Assembly (NCBI GenBank): GCA_000708835.1
Contig: DF237419.1
Span: 8,782-72,781, forward strand
Direction of reading: 5' to 3'
DNA length: 64,000 nucleotides
From: Klebsormidium nitens
Lineage: Eukaryota; Plantae; Klebsormidiophyceae
Below are positions 6,878 through 17,500 of the stretch, one piece after another; position 1 is the stretch's first letter; each line of letters begins with the position of its first letter. Position numbers and translations under genes: made by a program. A model generated the notes under the pieces. It saw only the letters and a list, made by a program, of their open reading frames with translations. It was not told where the DNA came from and did not search any database.

Positions 6878-9800
6878 TTATTGCTTCTCGACCTTCGAGA
6901 CTGGTGAAATCGTTCCAAAAGAAAGTCGAAATGTGCCGCTCGTGTTGATAGAATAGTTGCCCCCGTAAGGAGGCCTGCAAGCAACAAACTGAAAACGTTA
7001 GGGATGGAAGGTCGGGCCAACAACAAAAGGCTCGCTAAAAACAAATGTGTATCATCGAAAATGCAAAGATCGGCAGTTCTTGAAAGCAATAGCACAAGAA
7101 CCAACCATTATCAGACCATAAGTGCAACGGGTTGAGATCCACGTGATGCTGCACGCAAGAACAACTCAGGACTTGGCAAGCATGGTGCACCCCTGTCGTT
7201 ATCAATCTGCAACTTCAACTCCATGCTTCTTTAACTTGTGTACTTATAAACAAGCCGGATGGTGAAGCAGGCCTCAAAAGGGTGTCAAAAACGACCAGAG
7301 ATGCAGCTTACGTGTCCCAGTCGCCAGCCCCGTTAGTGACCACGAATTGGAGTGACGAGGCCGGTACGCGAATGACCTGTAAAAGAGATGGCACTAAGAG
7401 CACTAAACATACAGAAACCAATTTCTGCCGCTCTTGAACGTCAAGGACCGGCTGAATATTACTTGGTGCAAGCAGAAGGTAAAACCATGCACGTTTCTCT
7501 AGCTCGCAGATCCGTCCTACGAGGCCCGGCTTTCATTTGAAAGGACCTTCTTCGACGGTACCCTCTTTAGCCATCGAAAAATCTGTTGAGATCGCCCGGC
7601 TCGAAGCACCAAGCCCATCATGACCAGAGTTCGCGAACTAAAGGAATGAATGTACGAGCTCGGCTTTGCGGAGACGGAGCTCGCCGTGGTTTCCTCCGCT
7701 CATCTTTTCAGTCATTGCGGATGCAAATGTTCTGTCCTTTGAAGTCATGCAACCACTCAACAAGGAAAATTCCTTTCGGATTGATCCGATGACCAACATC
7801 GATGGCACAACGGAGCAGGAGTCCCCCACCTTGCTGTCCTGTTCGGCGTCAAAGCCAAACTGCACCCCGGGCAGTTCCGTCCAACTCCCGCCATCGGCCG
7901 CGAAGTGCAGGAAGGCCTTGTCCCAGCCGCTGTCGTACAGGAGCGTGATGACCCCGGCCTCAGGCGCCGTTTCCTCCGTGCCCGGAGCGAGGGCCTGGTT
8001 GATCGCGCGCTCCGCTTCCTGTATGGAGAGAGACGATGTGGATCCACAGAGCTGCTTTTATATGACTTCCGGGGGCCATCGGTGAAAGATCAAGGAAGTA
8101 AAAGAACACGTCGGCCCTTGAGACAAGGTCTAGGCCCTACTTAAGGACAGAGACAAGAAGAGCAAGACGCTTGAGCTGAAATACTTGACACCTGAAAGTC
8201 GCACCTCGTTCCTCGAACAACATCACACTGCGCATTGCCAACCGACTATCCCATCATGGACAAACGCGAGAACTCGCAACATCTCACATCGTTGTCGTAT
8301 CGTGCATCAGTGAAAGGCAAACGAGAAAAGGAGATACAAACCATGCGCACAAACTGCGCGGATGCGAACACAAACGATGATTCAAAGGTACATCGGAATC
8401 AAATACCCACCGTAACTTTGGTCTGGTCCTCTTCGGCAGTGCCCTCCTCTTCCTGTTCTTCACCCCTCTCTTCTCCCTCGGTCGCTTCCATCTCTGTTCC
8501 TTCCGGTACTTCCTCATCCGTTTCTTCTGGCGCCCTCTCAGTCTCCGTCTCGTCTGCCCCCTCCGTCTCTTCATTGACTGTCTCTGCGGCACCAGTGACC
8601 GGCTCCGCCGCCTCCCTAACCGACTCCTGTGCAGCCTCTGCGGGGCCGCTAACCGCCTCACTAACCACGTCCTTGGCCCCACTAACCACATCCCCAGCTT
8701 CCTTCGCTTTCTCCTCAACCTCCTCTTTGACTGTGTCTGCAGAGTCTTTGACTGCCTCGCTGGCCGCCTCTGCAGTCCCACTAACCACCTCACTAACCGG
8801 CTTGCTAACCTCCTCGGTTTCCTCATCTGCTATTCGTCCAAACACAGACGTGTCAGAGCTCGAGGCGTCCTCTTCAGCCGAGTCGTCCTCCCCTTCAGCG
8901 GTGTCAAACTTCTCGGCTGCAGAGGCAGCCAACTCCTGTGCGCCTGACTTAACACCATGTGCCGCCGACTTGACTCCCTCTACGGCCTCGCTGGTAGCCT
9001 CCTTCACTCCTTCCAAACCCTCTCCGGCCGCTTCTTTGACGGACTCGAGAACAGCCTCGGGACTCTCTGCACCAGGCTGCTCAACCTTAACTTCCTCCTT
9101 AACCTCGTCCTCGACCTCGTGCTTCACCCCCTCCTCGCTAACCTCATCCTCGACAGCCTTCTCAGCCTTGACTTCGTCCTTAACCTCACCCTTAACCTCC
9201 TCCCTACCCTCCTCTTCAGCATTCTCCTCCGACAGCGCTTCCTCTGCCGCCTCGTTCATTTCCTCGAGCCCTTCGGCAACAGCGCTCACTTCTTCAATCT
9301 TCTCAGGAACTTCCTCAGCCCTTGCCTCCAGATCCTCGCTCTCCGCATCCTCTGCCTCAGGCCCTTCAGCGGCAGCACTAGGCACCTCTGCACAGTCCTC
9401 GATGTTTGCATCTGGAATAGCCGCTTCAGCCGCCTCTAGTTCCTTCTTGACTTCCGCGCTTACAGTTGGCTCCTCTGGGATGCTCTCAGCTTTCACCTCC
9501 GAGACTGGCTCCGTCAAAGTGCTCTCCGCCGCAACTGGCTCCTCTCGGATGCTCTCCTCATTCTCATCTGGAATTGGCTCCTCAGCAGCGCTCTCAGTCT
9601 TCTCTTCTGCCACTGGAGCAGCCTCGTCTTCCCCCTCGGAAACCTGTGCTTCTGCCTGCTCCTCACTTTCTCGGCTGCTCTTCGTTGCATCTTCGGCAGC
9701 ATCCTGGACTTCTGACTTCGTGCTCCCTGCCTCTGCAACCACTCCAACAATCTCTTCTTCCTCATTTACAAAGTCAGGGACATTTGCATCCGGAATCACC

Positions 9801-12800
9801 TCCTCCGTCGCCTCTGGAAGCAACTCCGCGTCTGCTTCTGAGCTGGCTGCAGCTTTGTCCGCTGCTTCAGAAGGAATCTGGACAGGACTTGCCGCTGCGG
9901 CCTCAGCCTCGGCAGTCGCCTCGGTCTTGGGGACGAGGGTAGTGCTCAGTCCCTGAAGAAGACGAAGAACAATATGAGCACAGAGACGTTTGCAAAAAGA
10001 AAGAATTAAGCATGCTTTAAAAAAGCTGAGCATGATACTAAACAATCAACCATACCTCACTGCTGCTTACAACACAGTTCATGCCATGCGATTGGAAACC
10101 TCAGCATCATAGCCTGCGCCTGCATGCAAACTCACTAAAATCTCAATCTTCCATTCCGAGGGCCCTTCCAGCCCTGTTTCAGAAGGCCCAACGGTGGACG
10201 GGTGAAACCCTCACCGACCACTCCCTCAAAAGCTCTTGCGGTGCCACCTTTGTATCCAGGAAGTTCTGGACTTGCTTGATGGTCTCTTTCCGATCCTTGG
10301 CAAACAGCAGCTTCTTCACAAATACTTGAACCGCGGCTGCAGACCCCAGCAGCTGTAGCGCTGTCTCTGCCTGCAGAGTGAAAGGTTGTTGGCTTCCTTG
10401 CTTTGACGAAAAAGTCCATGTCTGCAGAGCAATGGTCTGTTGATCCTTGGCTGGCTGCAAGGTATGTCCCAAAATTATAAGGCATGTTCATTTTCAAGAA
10501 GTCAGCAGCGACAGTTCGAATCGGACAGACTTCCCACATGCATATTCCAGAAAAAGGTTTCATATGAAGGCCACCCTTGCGTCCAGATAATGTCGGTGCA
10601 GCTCTGAAAACTCAGCATCCAAATCCAATTGTAACCCCAGGGCGGCATTTTAACAAAGGGAGAGCGTTAGCGCAAGGTAATCTTACTGGGGGCAAAACGA
10701 AAGCATGATGATACTGGATAGAATTAATTCCCGAGTGTGATGAGAACATCTTGCACTCAAGACTTGACGTATTGCAAGTGCAGGAGAACTGACCTCTGTG
10801 AAGAGGATGAGCGATACACCAGCAGCGGCTGCGACTCCAAGTGTGGCTGGCAACACCTGCTTGTTGTCCTGCAATTCCTGCAGATCAGAGGCGAGGTCCT
10901 TGAAGGAAGGCTCCGTAACATCACCAACCCCCCAGCCTCTGACCTTTAAGCCCCTCGCTGGAACAGCAACCTTCAAACCTTTGCATATACTTTGTGTGGA
11001 GATGCAGGTAGAAATCCAACCAGATCCTACAGACGATCTAAACACGGACTAGAGCATGGGGGAGGTGCTTGAAGCGGACTTCCATAGGGTGACTGGTAAA
11101 TAAGCGGCCTAATTCTTCACAATCCTTTACAACAATCTGGTAAAGCAAGACAGCTATGATGAATGGAGCCTAAAGACAAACTATCTAGGTAGCTGTACCA
11201 AGCAGACTGTACAAAGAGAACATCAGCAAGGCCGATGGAACCACAGTAACTTGTCAACGTTTGTTCTTGAAAAGGAGAACAAACCAGAGGACAGGGTTGT
11301 ATTGTCTTCAGAAGGAGTGGATGTTGCCAGACAATCCTACAACAGCGTTTACAATGCCCTGTAGGGGCGACATTGTACACAGCGAATCGCACAATGTGTG
11401 CAGCAAGCAGCGTCTTCAGTCGGCTTCCTTCAATCACCTTGAGAGGCCTCCTAAACTGCGCGCTAATTTCACCACGACCATACCTTATGCACCGGGCATC
11501 TGCTATGGTTACTACTTGACACATGTTGCGTCGCTACGACTACAGCCTCAGTGGCATCCTCCCTCTACTCTATGGTGTGTTCCTATCTGTGTCTAGTGAG
11601 CTTGGGACCACCCTTGTCAGCAGACGGCTTCTCAAGAATCAGTCTGCAAGCAATTGGACTTGTGTAAGTAGTCGGAGCTTTTCTGAAGTAACTTAAATGA
11701 CTTCGGCATTCTATTTTGCGACCAGTGGTTGGGGATTTTCCAACCCCTGACCACTCTGGTGGGGCTCGAGGGCTTGCAAACATTGAAAGACAGCAACAGG
11801 AAGTTGTTTGAACGCGACTCTCTTAAGAAGCGGACGCTTCAGAATAAGGGACAAGGAACCAGCTTTACTCCAGAAAGAGGGGGTGAAAATGCAGAATACG
11901 CACCTGAATCGTGCTTGTGACAGCGTCCTTGATCTCGCCCAGATCTAGAGTGAACGTCTGTGGGGTTCTCCAAGGAAGCTGGCTCTCCTGAAGGCAGCAA
12001 TGTTAAAAGTCTATGAATAAAAGTGCGGGGCAAACTTTCGACGAGCACGCGAAAACTCTGCAAATAACAAGGCACCTGCAGACTTCTTCCAATTCAAGGG
12101 TCGACCTGGCACAAGAAGCAACTGCATTTACGGCTCAAATGGTCAGCATTGTGCAATTTCAACCTTTATTTCTCTGTCCTGTAACAGACCGCACCACGCA
12201 GGAGGTGCCTGGCTTCAGAAGATGTTGCGAAGGTGCTGACTGGTGACACAGAGATAAATCAGTGGTTTGGTTGAAGAGCATTGCTGGAACCACCAAAGAG
12301 AAGGCAAAAAAACGGCTATCTCAAATGGAGTAGCCGGAAGACGGCTATCTCAACTTGAGTAGCCCGAGGACGTGCCAAGGGTTTTGGAACAAAATGTCCC
12401 GAGCTCCTCTTAAAACTCACCCTCCACCCTTGCGGCCCTTGCGCTCCTCCGTTCACGACAAACACGCGGCTGTAGCCTTCCTTAGAGAGGATCTTTGCTG
12501 CCTGGGCGGCTGACGAGCCCGCGCTGCAGGAACAATTGTAACATTAGCAAGAGAAAACTTTGGAGATATGCAAAAAAGCTATTGCACCAAGTTCGGCGTA
12601 TTGACCTTTTCTTAAAACCTCAAAAGGTCAAGGACTCAACCACAATCAGCTGATCGAGAAATCTATGCGAATAGCTTCAAGCCTGCAAAGAAAACAGACT
12701 ATGCATCATCTGAAAAACAAGAGGGCGCTTTGAGGAGAAAGAATGCCGCTAAGGATGCGTAATGCCATGGTTTGATTGCCTGCTGCCATGAAGCCAAAGA

Positions 12801-14023
12801 ACTAAATTACACCATTACCAAGAGCAGATAAAGGCACCGTAAAAGGTCTTGTGGGCTTCTTGAGTAGCATGTTTTCACGTTTGAAGCACTTCACTGTAGC
12901 AGTTCACTACCCTGAACCCGTAAGCTCACTCAACATTAGGATTTCAGCGGAACCAGAGCAAATGTGCTTTACAAACCCTGTCAATGCTGCAGTTCAGTGG
13001 CTGCATTCCAAAATAGATATCGGCAGATACCAAAAGCCGCCAACAGCAAACCAGCACCCACATTCCGATTTACCTGTCCAGAAGCACAATAAGGGCGCCC
13101 TGGTCCAACGCCCTGCCCTTTACCGCTGTCCGCAGCTCTTCCTCAGCCCCCAGTCCCGCATCAGACTCCATAGCAACCGACAACACCTTCCGACCAAGCT
13201 TCGGGCTCCCCTCCTTAGCATTCTCATCCTTGCTCCTGATATCTACGAGGACCGCTCCGTCCTCTTTATTCAACCTCGCAAAGGCCTCGCTGGCACTCAA
13301 GTTCCCAGCATACCCCTTATTCATGCTCAAAAACAGAAGGATAGGGATGGAAACTGCCGCAACCCCTACGGCGACATACAGTGGGTTTGCGCTGAGGGCA
13401 TTCCCAATGTCCCCCGCTTGGGCCTTCCACTCGTCTAAAGACTTGTACCCGTCGATGAGCTCCTGGTCCCAGTAGTCCAGGGCCCACTTCACATCGGGGT
13501 TGTCCGCCCGCAGTTTGCTTAACCACGTCCCCGACTGGATGTCTGCCAGCTGCGCGCCCCAGTCGTCCAGAGACTTGTAACCGTCCTCCAACTCCTTATC
13601 CCAGTAATCGAACGCCCACTTGATGGTGGGGTTGCCCTGTCTCAGGTTTGCAAGCTGTGCCTTCCATTCATCAAGGGACTTGTACCCGTCCTCCAGCTCC
13701 ATATCCCAGTAATCGAGGGCCCACTTCACATCTTTGTTGTTTTCCCTCAAGTCTCCGAGGAATGTACCCAAGGGCAGCGTGGGGATCGCCTGTAAACTCT
13801 CAAAACCCTTAAAACCTGCGGCGGAGCACCTCACGCCAGCCCGCCTCCTGGTCGACTTCCACGAACCCAACCCTTCAGAGGCGCCCAAGCCTACGACCGA
13901 ATCGTGAGGAACTATCCTCTGCGCAGAACATGGCAGTTGCTGGGCTTCTGTAATTCTCCCCCTTGAAAAGGAGGAAGGTACAGCTAGCCCAGAGACCAGC
14001 CGCTGAGCACTGGCGGCCGCCAT
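6878..14023 (-). CDS. STR4: TROL/STR4-like thylakoid rhodanese protein with three N-terminal Trp-rich repeats, a long acidic linker and a C-terminal CBM25 starch-binding domain (~1089 aa)
   Basis: Exons (minus strand): 14023-13074, 12523-12421, 11987-11904, 10877-10794, 10370-10215, 9952-8411, 8018-7830, 7376-7312, 6974-6878. All have GT-AG ends and compatible phases. TROL-like segments: ANPLYVAVGVAAVSIP (TM1), VLVDIRS...GSP, NGGAQGPQGWRESQLPW, LGVAAAAGVSLILFTEAETALQLLGSAAAVQVFVKKLLFAKDRKETIKQVQNFLDTKVAPQELL. The C-terminus ITLLYDSGWDKAFLHF...GSWTELPGV...LQFVVTNGAGDWDTPPYGGNY matches the CBM25 pattern. Confidence 0.85.
12312..12369. repeat. Two tandem 29-bp units, each a small hairpin (GGCTA.CTC...GAGTAGCC), inside a TROL intron
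   Basis: acggctatctcaaatggagtagccggaag followed by acggctatctcaacttgagtagcccgagg. Confidence 0.8.
13418..13759 (-). repeat. Three coding repeats of ~35 aa, consensus L..LR..NP.VKWALDYWD.EL.DGYKSLDEW.AQ
   Basis: Visible in the translation of ORF 13070-14056 (aa ~100-213) and at DNA level, e.g. ccagtaatcgagggcccacttcacatc vs ccagtagtccagggcccacttcacatc. Confidence 0.95.
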
Positions 14024-14560
14024 GGCTTCCCAAGTTGTCGAAGAGAATGTGTGCAAGGTAGCTGTGAATGCTGTTTAATGTCCTTCAGCATCTGATTCTG
14101 GGGCCGGCTGAAGTACCCACTTTGCGGACTTCTTGTCCGCCAATTCCGGTACAATTGATTGCCAGATTTTGCTGCTTGCTGGCATAGGCCGTAGGTATAT
14201 GTTGTCCGAAAGCGCCTTCGGACGCTTTGCTGGACACTATGTAGCGCCAGCCTCCAGGGTACTAGTATCACGAGCAGCCTTTGAGCTTACCGGTATATGC
14301 AAAGTTTCCCCTGAAATCGAAGTTCTTTGCCTTTCTCCCCAGCTTCAATCCCTGGTACAGTCCTTCCCTGGACACCATAACACGCAGCGTGCCTCCTGGT
14401 TTGTAACTTGTAGCTGCTCTTGTAAATGCTCACACTGCAACCTTGGCCAATCCGCTTGACAACTCCCTGTCTCCTGAGCTTAGCTTTGGTTTCTTGTAGC
14501 AGTGGGAGTTCACAAGGAGTTTTGGGAAGCTAGCAATCCTGTTGCACGACACCAGGTCGG

Positions 14561-17500
14561 ATGACGGTCAAGGACGTGCTGAGATGGCGGCTGCCACTCC
14601 TGCTGGCAGTCACGCTGGGGCAGTGTTTGACTGTGAAAGCCCTCGAGAAGGACAGTTTCATGAAGATGGTGAGGGCCAACCTTGTTGCTTTAATTGTCAA
14701 AGCCTCTTGCCTCTGATTGTCTGATGAGTGTGGCGAATGCAGTATTGTGAAGATAACATGGAATATAAAGAAATTGTCACCACGCCAGCGAAGCTGGTTG
14801 TCTGAGGGGCTTGTTGACGGGCGACACATCTGGCAACAGGCTCTCTCTCCTTGCAATAGTCGGGCAATCCCATGGTTGTAAGTAAAGAACAGCTGCGTTT
14901 GCCCCCTTCCTTCAATCCTTATGAAAGGTCAGACCTACTAAACATACCTTATGGGCCCCTGAGTTTCTGACATTTATTGCACTTGTGGCCAGCTTTTCTG
15001 GTCGAAGTCTTTGAAATTCTGAAAGACAAGAAGGCCCATCCCCTGATATTCTCAGAGGAACATCGCCAATCCACATTTACAAGTTGATTGGGAGAGTTTT
15101 CAGGTTGAAGGTGTTGTCCTGGTCCTGTCAAGCTGCTTTTGTCAGGGGCCCGGTGTGTGCAATAAGGATGGCGATGAAATCATTGAGGTCATGGACCTAG
15201 AATAAGCCTGCCTTTGAGAAGCTTTCCAGCACACCTCTGAAAGGCAGTCATCCCGTTCTCGCAGTCCAAGTTGGAAACCCCCGTGCGAAACATTAAGTGG
15301 ATAGGACTCAGCGATCAGGTGAGCGTTTGATATCCCACGTCTTTCCCCCTCTTTTTTCTCCCCTCAATTTGTTGCCCTCTTGCATCAATGAGGGGTAAGC
15401 TTCACCTTCTCAAAAGACTGCACCAGCTTCAACAAGTGTGAATGGCATGTTTGGAACATCAGGACCCTTCGCTGTGTGAAACGCTGCATCAACTCGCTTG
15501 CTGGAATTAAAATCGGTATTTTTTGTTGAAAGCGGGGACATTTGTTGAAGAGAAGTAGATTTTTTATGTGTTGTCTTATCAACAGTGAATGATAGTCACG
15601 AAACACTTGGTGCTTCTGCAACCAGGCCAAGGACTGGTTTTACAGCAGTGGGTGACGAGGTTTATGAATCAATGCAGAAATGCCCGGCAGTGCAATTTGT
15701 TTTGCTTCAAGTATATATAAGTTCACCTTCTCACGCCCAGTAATAAGGTGACCTACTAAAAGATTGTTCGTCTCTTCTTCTCCAGATTGTGTTTGCACTT
15801 ACCGTGACAAACCACCTGTGGCGGAGCGAGGATGGGGGCATCTCTTGGGTGGACCAAACGGCCACAGACAAGGTGAAGCCTCCTACTTGCTTCTGCTTTC
15901 AGTAATTTCGCCAAGATCACTAGTAATCAATCACAGCTTGCACACTCCTGAACTCCAGGTTCCTGCACTGTACTCGATTGGGGTCTCTCGTCACAAGCCC
16001 TCCAGGATATAAAGCTACCTAGAAATGACCAGGACTACCGAGGATTGATTTAGTTGATTCCGACCCCCCACAGACCAGGACGAGACTCTGTTTTCGTACC
16101 TGAATGATTGACCGTTTGCTCTTGCAGTTGCTCAAGGTAATGGACGAAACACGCATCGGGTAAGTCACAAACTTGCACCATGTATGTTGGTCAGTTGGTC
16201 CTTGAACTTGAAGCAAATCTTGCCAAGGTGATGGAAATGTTAATGTGGTGCGCAGTCGCCTCAAACGGAAGTTCTGGCGGGAGGGACTCTTGCGGCGTCA
16301 TCAGCCAGCCATCCACTGCTTTTTCACAATTGCATCTTTTCACCGCTCTTGCAGCAACCTTTCACCCGTGTCCGGAGTTGCCGACATCCTTTTCTCCTGG
16401 GATGCCCCTGAGAAGGTGAGCGGCACCACTTGGAAGTCCGAAATGCAGACACCAAGAAATTCAAAGAAATCCTGCTTTTTCAACTGCGATCGTTCTTCCC
16501 CAAACGTGTAGATCTTGAACTTGATCTACCCACTTTCCAGGATTCAGCCTGTGGCTCTCGTTTCAAAATCTTTCAAGTTCGAAGGTTTTTGTATCTCCAC
16601 GCAGATCTTCTTCCGGGGCTTTGGCAACTTCCACTGGATAACGTCCGACTTTGGTCGCATGTACGAACGGGTGCTGGGGCCAATCGGACAGACCGGAATG
16701 GTCACATGGCGGCAGCACCCGACTGAAACGGAGTGGGTGCGTGCAACATTTCTTTGCAATGTCTGGTTTTCCTGTTTTCCGGAACCGTCGTCTGACGGGT
16801 CGGTCCCATTTTGATTGGACAAAATACTCTCCTTCACTCCTCTGTTTACAAAAAGCTCTGCGGATACTTCATTGATTATGTTTCTCTCTCTCCGTGATAT
16901 CATGGCAGTTCCGGTTTCCCATCCGTCTTGAGTGCTTTGAATCTGGTCCTTCCATGCACTTCAAATCTGTATCCCCTCTCTCTTAATCCCACTTGCTGTC
17001 ATAGAGGCAGGAAGTAATTAAGGAAGTGGTCTTGTCAAGATGACAAATGCTTGATTATAACCGAGGCAGTTCCATGCACAGACATAAGCTAGCAAGATCT
17101 TGAATACAATACACAGACCTTGGTCAAATGTGTGTTACAGCGCTTGGATCCTGTTGCACAGGCGATACTGAGTGATAGGAAAACAAGACGAGGTACGCTG
17201 ATGGGAATCTTGAAAGAAGAAGTTTTGTTTCTGCAGCTTCTGGTTATTGCTGTCAGATGGAGCTGTTGGGGCGCATCAGGGCCGCCCTGCGGAAATGACG
17301 TGAGTCACACTATATCAACTGTAGGATTGCGTAGGATCAAGTTCTACTTGAAAACACTCTAACTGACATGTTCAAAATTATGGCGGAGATGCGAACAAGT
17401 CTCGTCAAAGCAAACGCCGGAGGCTTGTTTGAGTTCAATGAGCGTCTGCTTATCTTCTTTGCCACAGCTGGTAAAGTCGGATCCAAATGTCAATCGCTAG

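Follow-up and report, generated by a model that had tools for sequence, protein, structure and literature searches.

A Trp-rich 35-residue repeat ahead of the membrane helix in a rhodanese-domain protein of Klebsormidium nitens

A 64,000-nucleotide stretch of the genome of the alga Klebsormidium nitens (contig DF237419.1, positions 8,782 to 72,781; the whole stretch is called the window here) encodes a 382-residue protein in which three copies of a 35-residue, Trp-rich repeat stand between a transit-peptide-like N-terminus and a membrane helix, with a rhodanese domain behind the helix. The repeat is expressed in a spliced mRNA, is under strong constraint, and, as far as public data go, appears to be an orphan restricted to Klebsormidium and its close kin. 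We suggest that it may be a stromal helical-hairpin docking module anchored by the membrane, a reading to which we assign a probability of roughly 0.45.

Non-catalytic rhodanese membrane proteins are emerging as organizers of structures associated with thylakoids, as exemplified by TROL (FNR), CAS (Ca2+ signaling and pyrenoid tubules), RBMP2 (reticulated tubules), and PMTT of Chlorella, and on this rhodanese scaffold the K. nitens protein carries a head that is new, strongly conserved, and specific to its lineage. Klebsormidium is an early-branching relative of the land plants, and we know of no pyrenoid component described for it. Our literature search found no paper naming the gene (KFL_004700050), and a 2026 review describes no comparable tether in a streptophyte alga. 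The domain, at ~150 aa, is concrete, small, and expressible for partner fishing. If its partner were Rubisco or starch, the protein would represent a streptophyte-type tether of interest for plant pyrenoid engineering, and if the partner were Ca2+, it would show how freely the N-domain of CAS and TROL can be replaced.

The repeat, its expression, and its distribution

The minus strand is one long open frame over window positions 13070 to 14056, with an ATG at 14023, and exon 1 of the gene is 100% identical to K. nitens GAQ88923.1 (KFL_004700050, 382 aa, annotated as a "hypothetical protein"). An earlier examination of the window from its letters alone (the sequence-only reading) had reported here three 35-residue peptides of no recognized family, each with three Trp and two Tyr that it took to be invariant, inserted between a transit peptide and the first transmembrane helix (TM1). 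The minus strand encodes these peptides exactly as quoted, and they do follow a transit-peptide-like N-terminus and end 12 residues before residues 215 to 233, the sole strongly hydrophobic segment in the 382-residue product. The unit spacing is 35 and then 44 residues, with a 9-residue spacer before unit 3 that the earlier description lacked. The repeat stretch holds 10 of the 11 Trp residues of exon 1, and a tblastn search of the whole window with one unit returned the three copies only, with E values (5e-14 to 7e-21) far beyond chance.

W13, W18, W32, Y17, and Y26 are constant in all 13 distinct units available from eight proteins. Across the same units, 18 of the 35 positions are invariant (L1, R5, N8, K12, W13, A14, D16, Y17, W18, E21, L22, D24, G25, Y26, S28, L29, D30, and W32), with both charged residues and aromatics among them, and the conserved core is KWAxDYWDxELxDGYKSLDxW rather than the WKxxL end. 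The three K. nitens units are 69 to 80% identical to one another as protein versus 66 to 71% as DNA, and each pair differs by 10 to 13 synonymous codon changes while keeping the core. Because synonymous differences are this numerous and protein identity exceeds DNA identity, the copies are old and have been maintained by selection; it is also because of the low DNA identity that Tandem Repeats Finder reported no DNA-level array at the repeat region. Between K. nitens and a sister species (see below), the dN/dS ratio of the repeats is 0.036 (with dS saturated), compared with 0.12 for the rhodanese domain, 0.18 for the TM region, and 0.15 for the transit peptide, and within the mature protein constraint is weakest in the pre-repeat segment (residues 67 to 88), at 0.34. 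No other part of exon 1 is as constrained as the repeat.

Homologous sequences come from three taxa. A database protein (P0006) is identical to the spliced 382-residue product, and an open reading frame in a Klebsormidium subtile transcriptome (P0001) is 93% identical with the same structure. The third and more distant taxon, the sister species, is represented by JGI metagenome contigs (P0002 and L001) and by Logan contigs, and BLASTP gives 70% protein identity for its exon 1. One of the Logan contigs, L003 (run SRR10920916), lacks the introns and matches the genomic contig L001 in four separate blocks, and it runs into a stop codon in exon 4 and then into a 3' untranslated region (UTR). Our splice model is confirmed by the database protein, the K. 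subtile frame, and this spliced mRNA contig. Since L003 matches L001 block by block, the repeat-bearing product is expressed as a spliced mRNA that ends just past the rhodanese domain.

A profile of ten units, searched with HMMER against 1.84 billion representative proteins, recovered the protein's own Klebsormidium cluster (E 6e-88) and three further matches that we judged to be due to chance: a bacterial NB-ARC/TPR protein shares only AVDYWEQEL, and two bacterial beta-repeat proteins share only NP..GW.FD.W. No Pfam family matched exon 1 or the repeat alone at E values up to 10, in keeping with the sequence-only reading; eIF3m_C_helix and Med9, which surfaced in scans at this threshold, were set aside as noise. 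The ESM Atlas gave no usable match for the repeat part, and word-indexed searches with exon 1 and with the rhodanese half returned two Klebsormidium clusters only. The taxa differ in unit number. In a comparison of L001 positions 10001 to 11062 with window positions 13074 to 14023, the sister species has four units in the order A-B-B-spacer-A, versus three in the order A-B-spacer-A in K. nitens and K. subtile, and of the two B units in the sister species it is the second that the K. nitens type-B unit resembles more. The copy-number difference is the gain or loss of one internal unit.

Family placement, predicted structure, and possible function

The full protein matches the rhodanese family PF00581 with 26.5 bits, and its rhodanese domain matches two sequences of the Protein Data Bank (PDB), 8tfs_A (E 1.7e-13, 53.7 bits) and 1vee_A (E 7.5e-12, 48.2 bits). 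The latter is the rhodanese domain of Arabidopsis At4g01050, i.e., TROL, in which the catalytic Cys is replaced by Asp (PMC7108012), and an Asp of the K. nitens protein aligns with this replacement in the LLD-S/K loop; the match to 8tfs likewise shows Asp where the Cys would be. The best ESM Atlas feature matches are "Calcium sensing receptor, chloroplastic" (CAS, 0.89) and "Rhodanese-like domain-containing protein 4A" (STR4A, 0.88). These similarities place the 382-residue product among the non-catalytic rhodanese proteins of thylakoids that make up the TROL/CAS group. The scores of 8tfs_A and TROL 1vee_A are alike, and neither these nor the Atlas scores decide between TROL and CAS. In the C-terminal end of the rhodanese domain, as aligned with 1vee, and in the exons downstream, the likeness appears to be greater to TROL than to CAS.

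TROL is reported to have its N-terminal domain and its C-terminus in the stroma and its rhodanese domain in the lumen (PMC10604066, PMC7108012), and in CAS both the N- and the C-terminal domains are exposed to the stroma, as established by protease and antibody experiments (PMC6682602). Because the N-domains of TROL and CAS are stromal and no lumen-targeting hydrophobic signal was seen in the translation after the transit peptide, a stromal location is the best inference for the repeat. The transit peptide would be cleaved near residue 66, at a VRC/SAA-type site (GVRC/SAAG, the slash marking the cut), if the usual pattern of the stromal peptidase holds.

The repeat region is acidic, with 26 Asp or Glu among 114 residues, a net charge of -12, and a pI of 4.25. 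AlphaFold2, run with an eight-sequence alignment and with a single four-repeat sequence, predicts it to be all-helical with breaks at DGYKS and NP, and this hairpin-like periodicity agrees with the helical hairpin that the sequence-only reading had imagined. Good helix caps can be recognized in the sequence itself: Asn-Pro before one helix (helix B) and Asp-Gly after it, and Ser-x-x-Glu before the other (helix A). By helical-wheel inspection, helix B presents one face with V11, A14, L15, W18, and L22 and, separate from it, W13 and Y17 one turn apart, and helix A presents a face with L29, W32, L1', and L4'. Hydrophobic moments are moderate (0.26 to 0.51), and the units abut without low-complexity spacers.

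In the reading that we favor, the repeat is the N-terminal head of the mature protein, which belongs with the thylakoid proteins of the TROL/CAS type. Each 35-residue unit would form two short helices, one over about positions 9 to 24, beginning at the Asn-Pro cap and finishing at Asp-Gly, and another from position 28 into the following unit, beginning with the Ser-x-x-Glu capping box. Three units (four in the sister species) and a terminal half-helix would stack back to back as a small array of helices, which TM1 would keep 12 residues off the stromal face of the membrane. Such an array would repeat one acidic-aromatic surface (W13, Y17, E21, D24, Y26, and their neighbors), and this surface would hold a stromal partner at the thylakoid. 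It is because of its strong conservation that we think the repeat probably docks a partner at the membrane. The role would parallel that of the FNR-docking tail of plant TROL and of the Rubisco-binding motifs of Chlamydomonas RBMP2, and rhodanese membrane proteins with docking modules have been described in RBMP2 (bioRxiv 10.64898/2026.06.29.735335) and Chlorella PMTT (bioRxiv 10.64898/2026.07.17.739135). The multivalent stromal binding module proposed by the sequence-only reading is thus retained in part: the absence of a known family, the predicted helices, the dN/dS of 0.036 (a value to be expected if a binding or structural module is at work), and the stromal precedents speak for it, and the Rubisco sticker that it named as one form of the module is not supported by the sequence.

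Several observations weigh against the docking module. Only three closely related taxa carry the repeat, which leaves little comparative power. AlphaFold2 yielded no confident tertiary model (mean pLDDT of 41 with eight sequences and 51 with the single sequence), and no TPR or other repeat model in Pfam matches at E values up to 10. The charge-hydropathy plot puts the repeat region on the disordered side (H of 0.389, boundary of 0.451), and for this reason the region may fold only on binding or with cations. More weakly, a Lys stands just after TM1, so that the positive-inside rule would put the rhodanese side in the stroma.

The case for Rubisco as the partner began with the unit ends EWKAQL, DWGAQL, and EWKAQA, which read as the sequence-only reading stated. 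The junction helix W32-K33-x-x-L1'-x-x-L4'-R5' would then bind Rubisco in the manner of EPYC1 or RBMP2, and the protein would tether the pyrenoid matrix to traversing thylakoids. Klebsormidium has a pyrenoid, and the context is suggestive, in that two other green algae have inactive-rhodanese thylakoid proteins with Rubisco-binding motifs. Where unit 1 meets unit 2, the sequence (E-W-K-A-Q-L-A-N-L-R) has W, K, and L spaced as in EPYC1 N62-W63-R64-x-x-L67, where R64 makes an essential salt bridge and W63 and L67 make hydrophobic contact (PMC7673724). At the corresponding position, however, only 6 of the 13 distinct units have K, another 6 have G, and 1 has A; all type-B units are without the basic residue, and no position in the C-terminal half of the unit is less conserved. 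The strict motif [D/N]W[R/K]xx[L/I/V/A] does not occur, since EWKAQL and EWKAQA have E for D/N at position 1 and DWGAQL lacks the basic residue, and among shuffled versions of the mature protein 7% contain one or more relaxed matches. In addition, the L-R pair is missing from the second and third junctions, and W32, L1', and L4' make up the face most likely to be buried in the hairpin. Moreover, the Chlamydomonas motif sits in disorder or at the exact C-terminus, whereas the units here are contiguous, predicted to be helical, and free of disordered spacers, with their conserved core elsewhere; its target, too, is RbcS helices of the Chlamydomonas type, and in Chlorella another motif acts on RbcL. 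We consider a Rubisco sticker unlikely.

If the repeat were a cation-binding domain like that of CAS, the 382-residue product would serve in the stroma as a Ca2+ sensor or buffer. In layout, the short product that is expressed matches CAS, whose N-domain is likewise motif-less yet binds Ca2+ with low affinity (PMC6682602), and its 382 residues compare with 383 in the best Atlas cluster, which is CAS. The acidic composition given above and the invariance of D16, E21, D24, and D30 fit such a role, and the borderline-disorder composition could mean that cations induce folding. It leaves the five invariant aromatics per unit unexplained, however, and no EF-hand or canonical Ca2+ loop fits the unit in any register on inspection. 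Nor did the repeat profile find a CAS N-domain, and the rhodanese C-terminal end, as noted, appears closer to TROL, so that we find a Ca2+ role improbable. The same aromatics, five in 35 residues, would be accounted for if exposed Trp and Tyr, with acidic or polar groups beside them, stacked on the sugar rings of starch or of the galactolipids MGDG and DGDG, fixing the membrane to starch or shaping the membrane as the N-terminal contact region of RBMP2 does. W13 and Y17 lie off the V11/A14/L15/W18/L22 core face, the domain is only 12 residues from the membrane, and in RBMP2 a helical region that contacts the membrane precedes the first TM helix. A net charge of -12 would be unfavorable on the negative thylakoid surface, though, hydrophobic moments do not exceed moderate values, glucan binders built of helices alone are rare, and neither Pfam nor the profile search revealed similarity to any carbohydrate-binding module or to RBMP2; we hold glucan or galactolipid binding to be quite improbable. 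Finally, the repeats may pair between molecules in the same or in apposed membranes and so oligomerize the protein or zip thylakoids. The amphipathic helices with heptad-like L29/W32/L1'/L4' spacing and the differing copy number between species would suit self-association, and hornwort RbcS-STAR illustrates that helical self-association can organize a pyrenoid (PMC13655443). Helices of ~15 residues are nonetheless short of coiled-coil length, and the strong negative charge would oppose pairing unless cations were present, which makes this the least probable of the explanations that we considered.

Layout of the locus and a candidate long isoform

The features of the locus are listed in Table 1.

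Table 1. Coordinates of the repeat gene and of conserved features downstream of it, in window positions
Feature	Position	Strand	Remarks
Coding sequence, four exons	14023-13074, 12523-12421, 11987-11904, 11643-11632	minus	GT-AG introns
Start codon (14023-14021) and transit-peptide-like N-terminus, aa 1-66	13826-14023	minus	Ser/Ala/Arg-rich; 100% identical to GAQ88923.1
Pre-repeat segment, aa 67-88 (22 residues)	13760-13825	minus	Its end GTF-L mirrors the GTW-L preceding unit 3
Repeat unit 1 (type A), aa 89-123	13655-13759	minus	
Repeat unit 2 (type B, KWAF...WGAQ), aa 124-158	13550-13654	minus	The sister species has two of this type
Spacer LADIQSGTW between units 2 and 3 (9 residues)	13523-13549	minus	Similar to AGDIGNA, which follows unit 3
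Repeat unit 3 (type A), aa 168-202	13418-13522	minus	
Cap/linker AGDIGNALSANP from last unit to membrane helix (12 residues)	13382-13417	minus	
TM1, aa 215-233	13325-13381	minus	Top 19-residue Kyte-Doolittle window, mean 2.33
Rhodanese domain, first part, to the end of exon 1	13074-13324	minus	Donor AG/GTAAAT; PF00581
Exon 2, rest of rhodanese active-site loop region	12421-12523	minus	Conserved with L001; spliced in L003
Exon 3, end of rhodanese domain (LPWRTPQ)	11904-11987	minus	Phase-0 donor
Exon 4, coding part, three codons and stop	11632-11643	minus	P0006 and P0001 end here; L003 has one codon and stop
3' UTR of the short mRNA, ~285 nt	11347-11631	minus	Ends at TGTAA
Candidate exon for a second membrane helix (TM2), LPATLGVAAAAGVSLILFTE	10794-10877	minus	Conserved in L001; annotated within the 722-aa gene
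Conserved exon after the second helix, LQLLGSAAAVQVFVKKLLFAKDRKETIKQV	10209-10376	minus	82% identical in L001

The NCBI annotation places a separate gene for a 722-aa protein on the minus strand, 547 bp downstream of the repeat gene (window positions 11085 to 6878). The candidate TM2 exon and the conserved exon that follows it presumably resemble the segment of plant TROL behind the rhodanese domain. The TM2 exon has a phase-0 acceptor in both species, which fits the phase-0 donor of exon 3, there is no in-frame ATG upstream of it in K. nitens or in the sister species, and the annotated start of the 722-aa gene is not conserved in the sister species. For these reasons, a long TROL-like isoform that skips exon 4 is plausible on intron phase and conservation, and the two annotated genes may be one TROL-like locus, with a CAS-like short form and a TROL-like long form made from one gene. 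All transcript evidence that we obtained is of the short form, and three transcript or annotation models stop before the TM2 exon. Should the Rubisco-binding head and the long isoform both exist, with a second membrane helix and a hypothetical starch-binding tail, the protein would be the first tether from thylakoid to matrix to starch in a streptophyte pyrenoid, built on the scaffold of RBMP2 and PMTT and carrying an unrelated, folded sticker; we consider this a doubtful prospect.

Farther along the minus strand, a 548-codon frame (8399 to 10045) encodes a very acidic linker rich in Glu, Ala, and Val, with a recurring motif E-E-V/P-I-P-D-A-N-V/I-E/P-D of which the sister species also has several copies. 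The long isoform, if it exists, would have an acidic linker where TROL has its proline-rich and ITEP tail. A word-indexed homologue search with this downstream acidic exon returned nothing, neither the 722-aa neighbor nor a fused model.

The last-exon block on the minus strand (11347 to 11664) is ~75% identical to the sister-species contig over 325 nt and is as conserved as the coding exons, and the introns are without similarity. No Rfam family matches this block. One possibility is that it serves as an alternative last exon, conserved in the two species, and governs a switch between the short and long isoforms. On the other side of the repeat gene, a divergent plus-strand gene with a signal-peptide-like start begins at 14561 and is annotated in K. 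nitens as an 838-aa Sortilin/Vps10-domain protein. The two genes are 537 bp apart, and the interval (14024 to 14560) is probably a shared bidirectional promoter.

Comparison with known systems

In outline, the repeat resembles TPR-type repeats (34 to 42 aa): its period is ~35 residues, each unit would have two helices, helix B contains an aromatic as well as a small residue, a capping helix would close the series, and hhalign places unit positions 9 to 23 on helix B of TPR_12-type repeats. The likeness is an analogy of shape only, in that just 15 columns align with a target chosen post hoc from the profile search and helix A lacks the TPR signature.

The rest of the protein invites comparison with TROL (At4g01050, STR4), with which it shares a transit peptide, an N-terminal segment, TM1, and an Asp-type rhodanese domain whose match extends to the GP.GW...LPW..P end (PMC7108012; PMC10604066). 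In the locus here, the conserved exons farther downstream appear to specify a second membrane helix and also a juxtamembrane helix, features known from TROL. Plant TROL differs in having only a short N-terminal segment without a Trp-rich repeat. The mRNA verified here ends directly behind the rhodanese domain, and the 382-residue product has neither the proline-rich PEPE region nor the ITEP motif that binds FNR. CAS (At5g23060, Cre12.g497300) has the overall size and layout of the 382-residue product, with a transit peptide, a motif-less N-domain of ~150 aa, one membrane helix, a non-catalytic rhodanese domain, and a short tail (PMC6682602). As in the 382-residue product, its single membrane helix divides the N-terminal domain from the C-terminal rhodanese domain; its N-domain is acidic, and CAS is the top Atlas match. 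Nevertheless, the repeat profile search detected no sequence relation between the N-domains. In Chlamydomonas, CAS relocates to the pyrenoid tubules (PMC10473226).

RBMP2 of Chlamydomonas consists of a helical region at the N-terminus, a membrane helix, an inactive rhodanese domain of the Asp type, two more helices, and six Rubisco-binding motifs, and Chlorella PMTT combines a membrane anchor, five motifs, and an inactive rhodanese domain. In these proteins short motifs lie in disordered regions C-terminal to the anchor, whereas the Klebsormidium protein has contiguous 35-residue units, predicted to be helical, at its N-terminus; the strict motif is absent from it, and the profile search detected no homology of the repeat to either protein. 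RBMP2 is alike in having a helical region before TM1, and with both proteins the Klebsormidium product would share a general design, in which one or more thylakoid helices and a non-catalytic rhodanese domain are joined to a multivalent module facing the stroma or the pyrenoid matrix.

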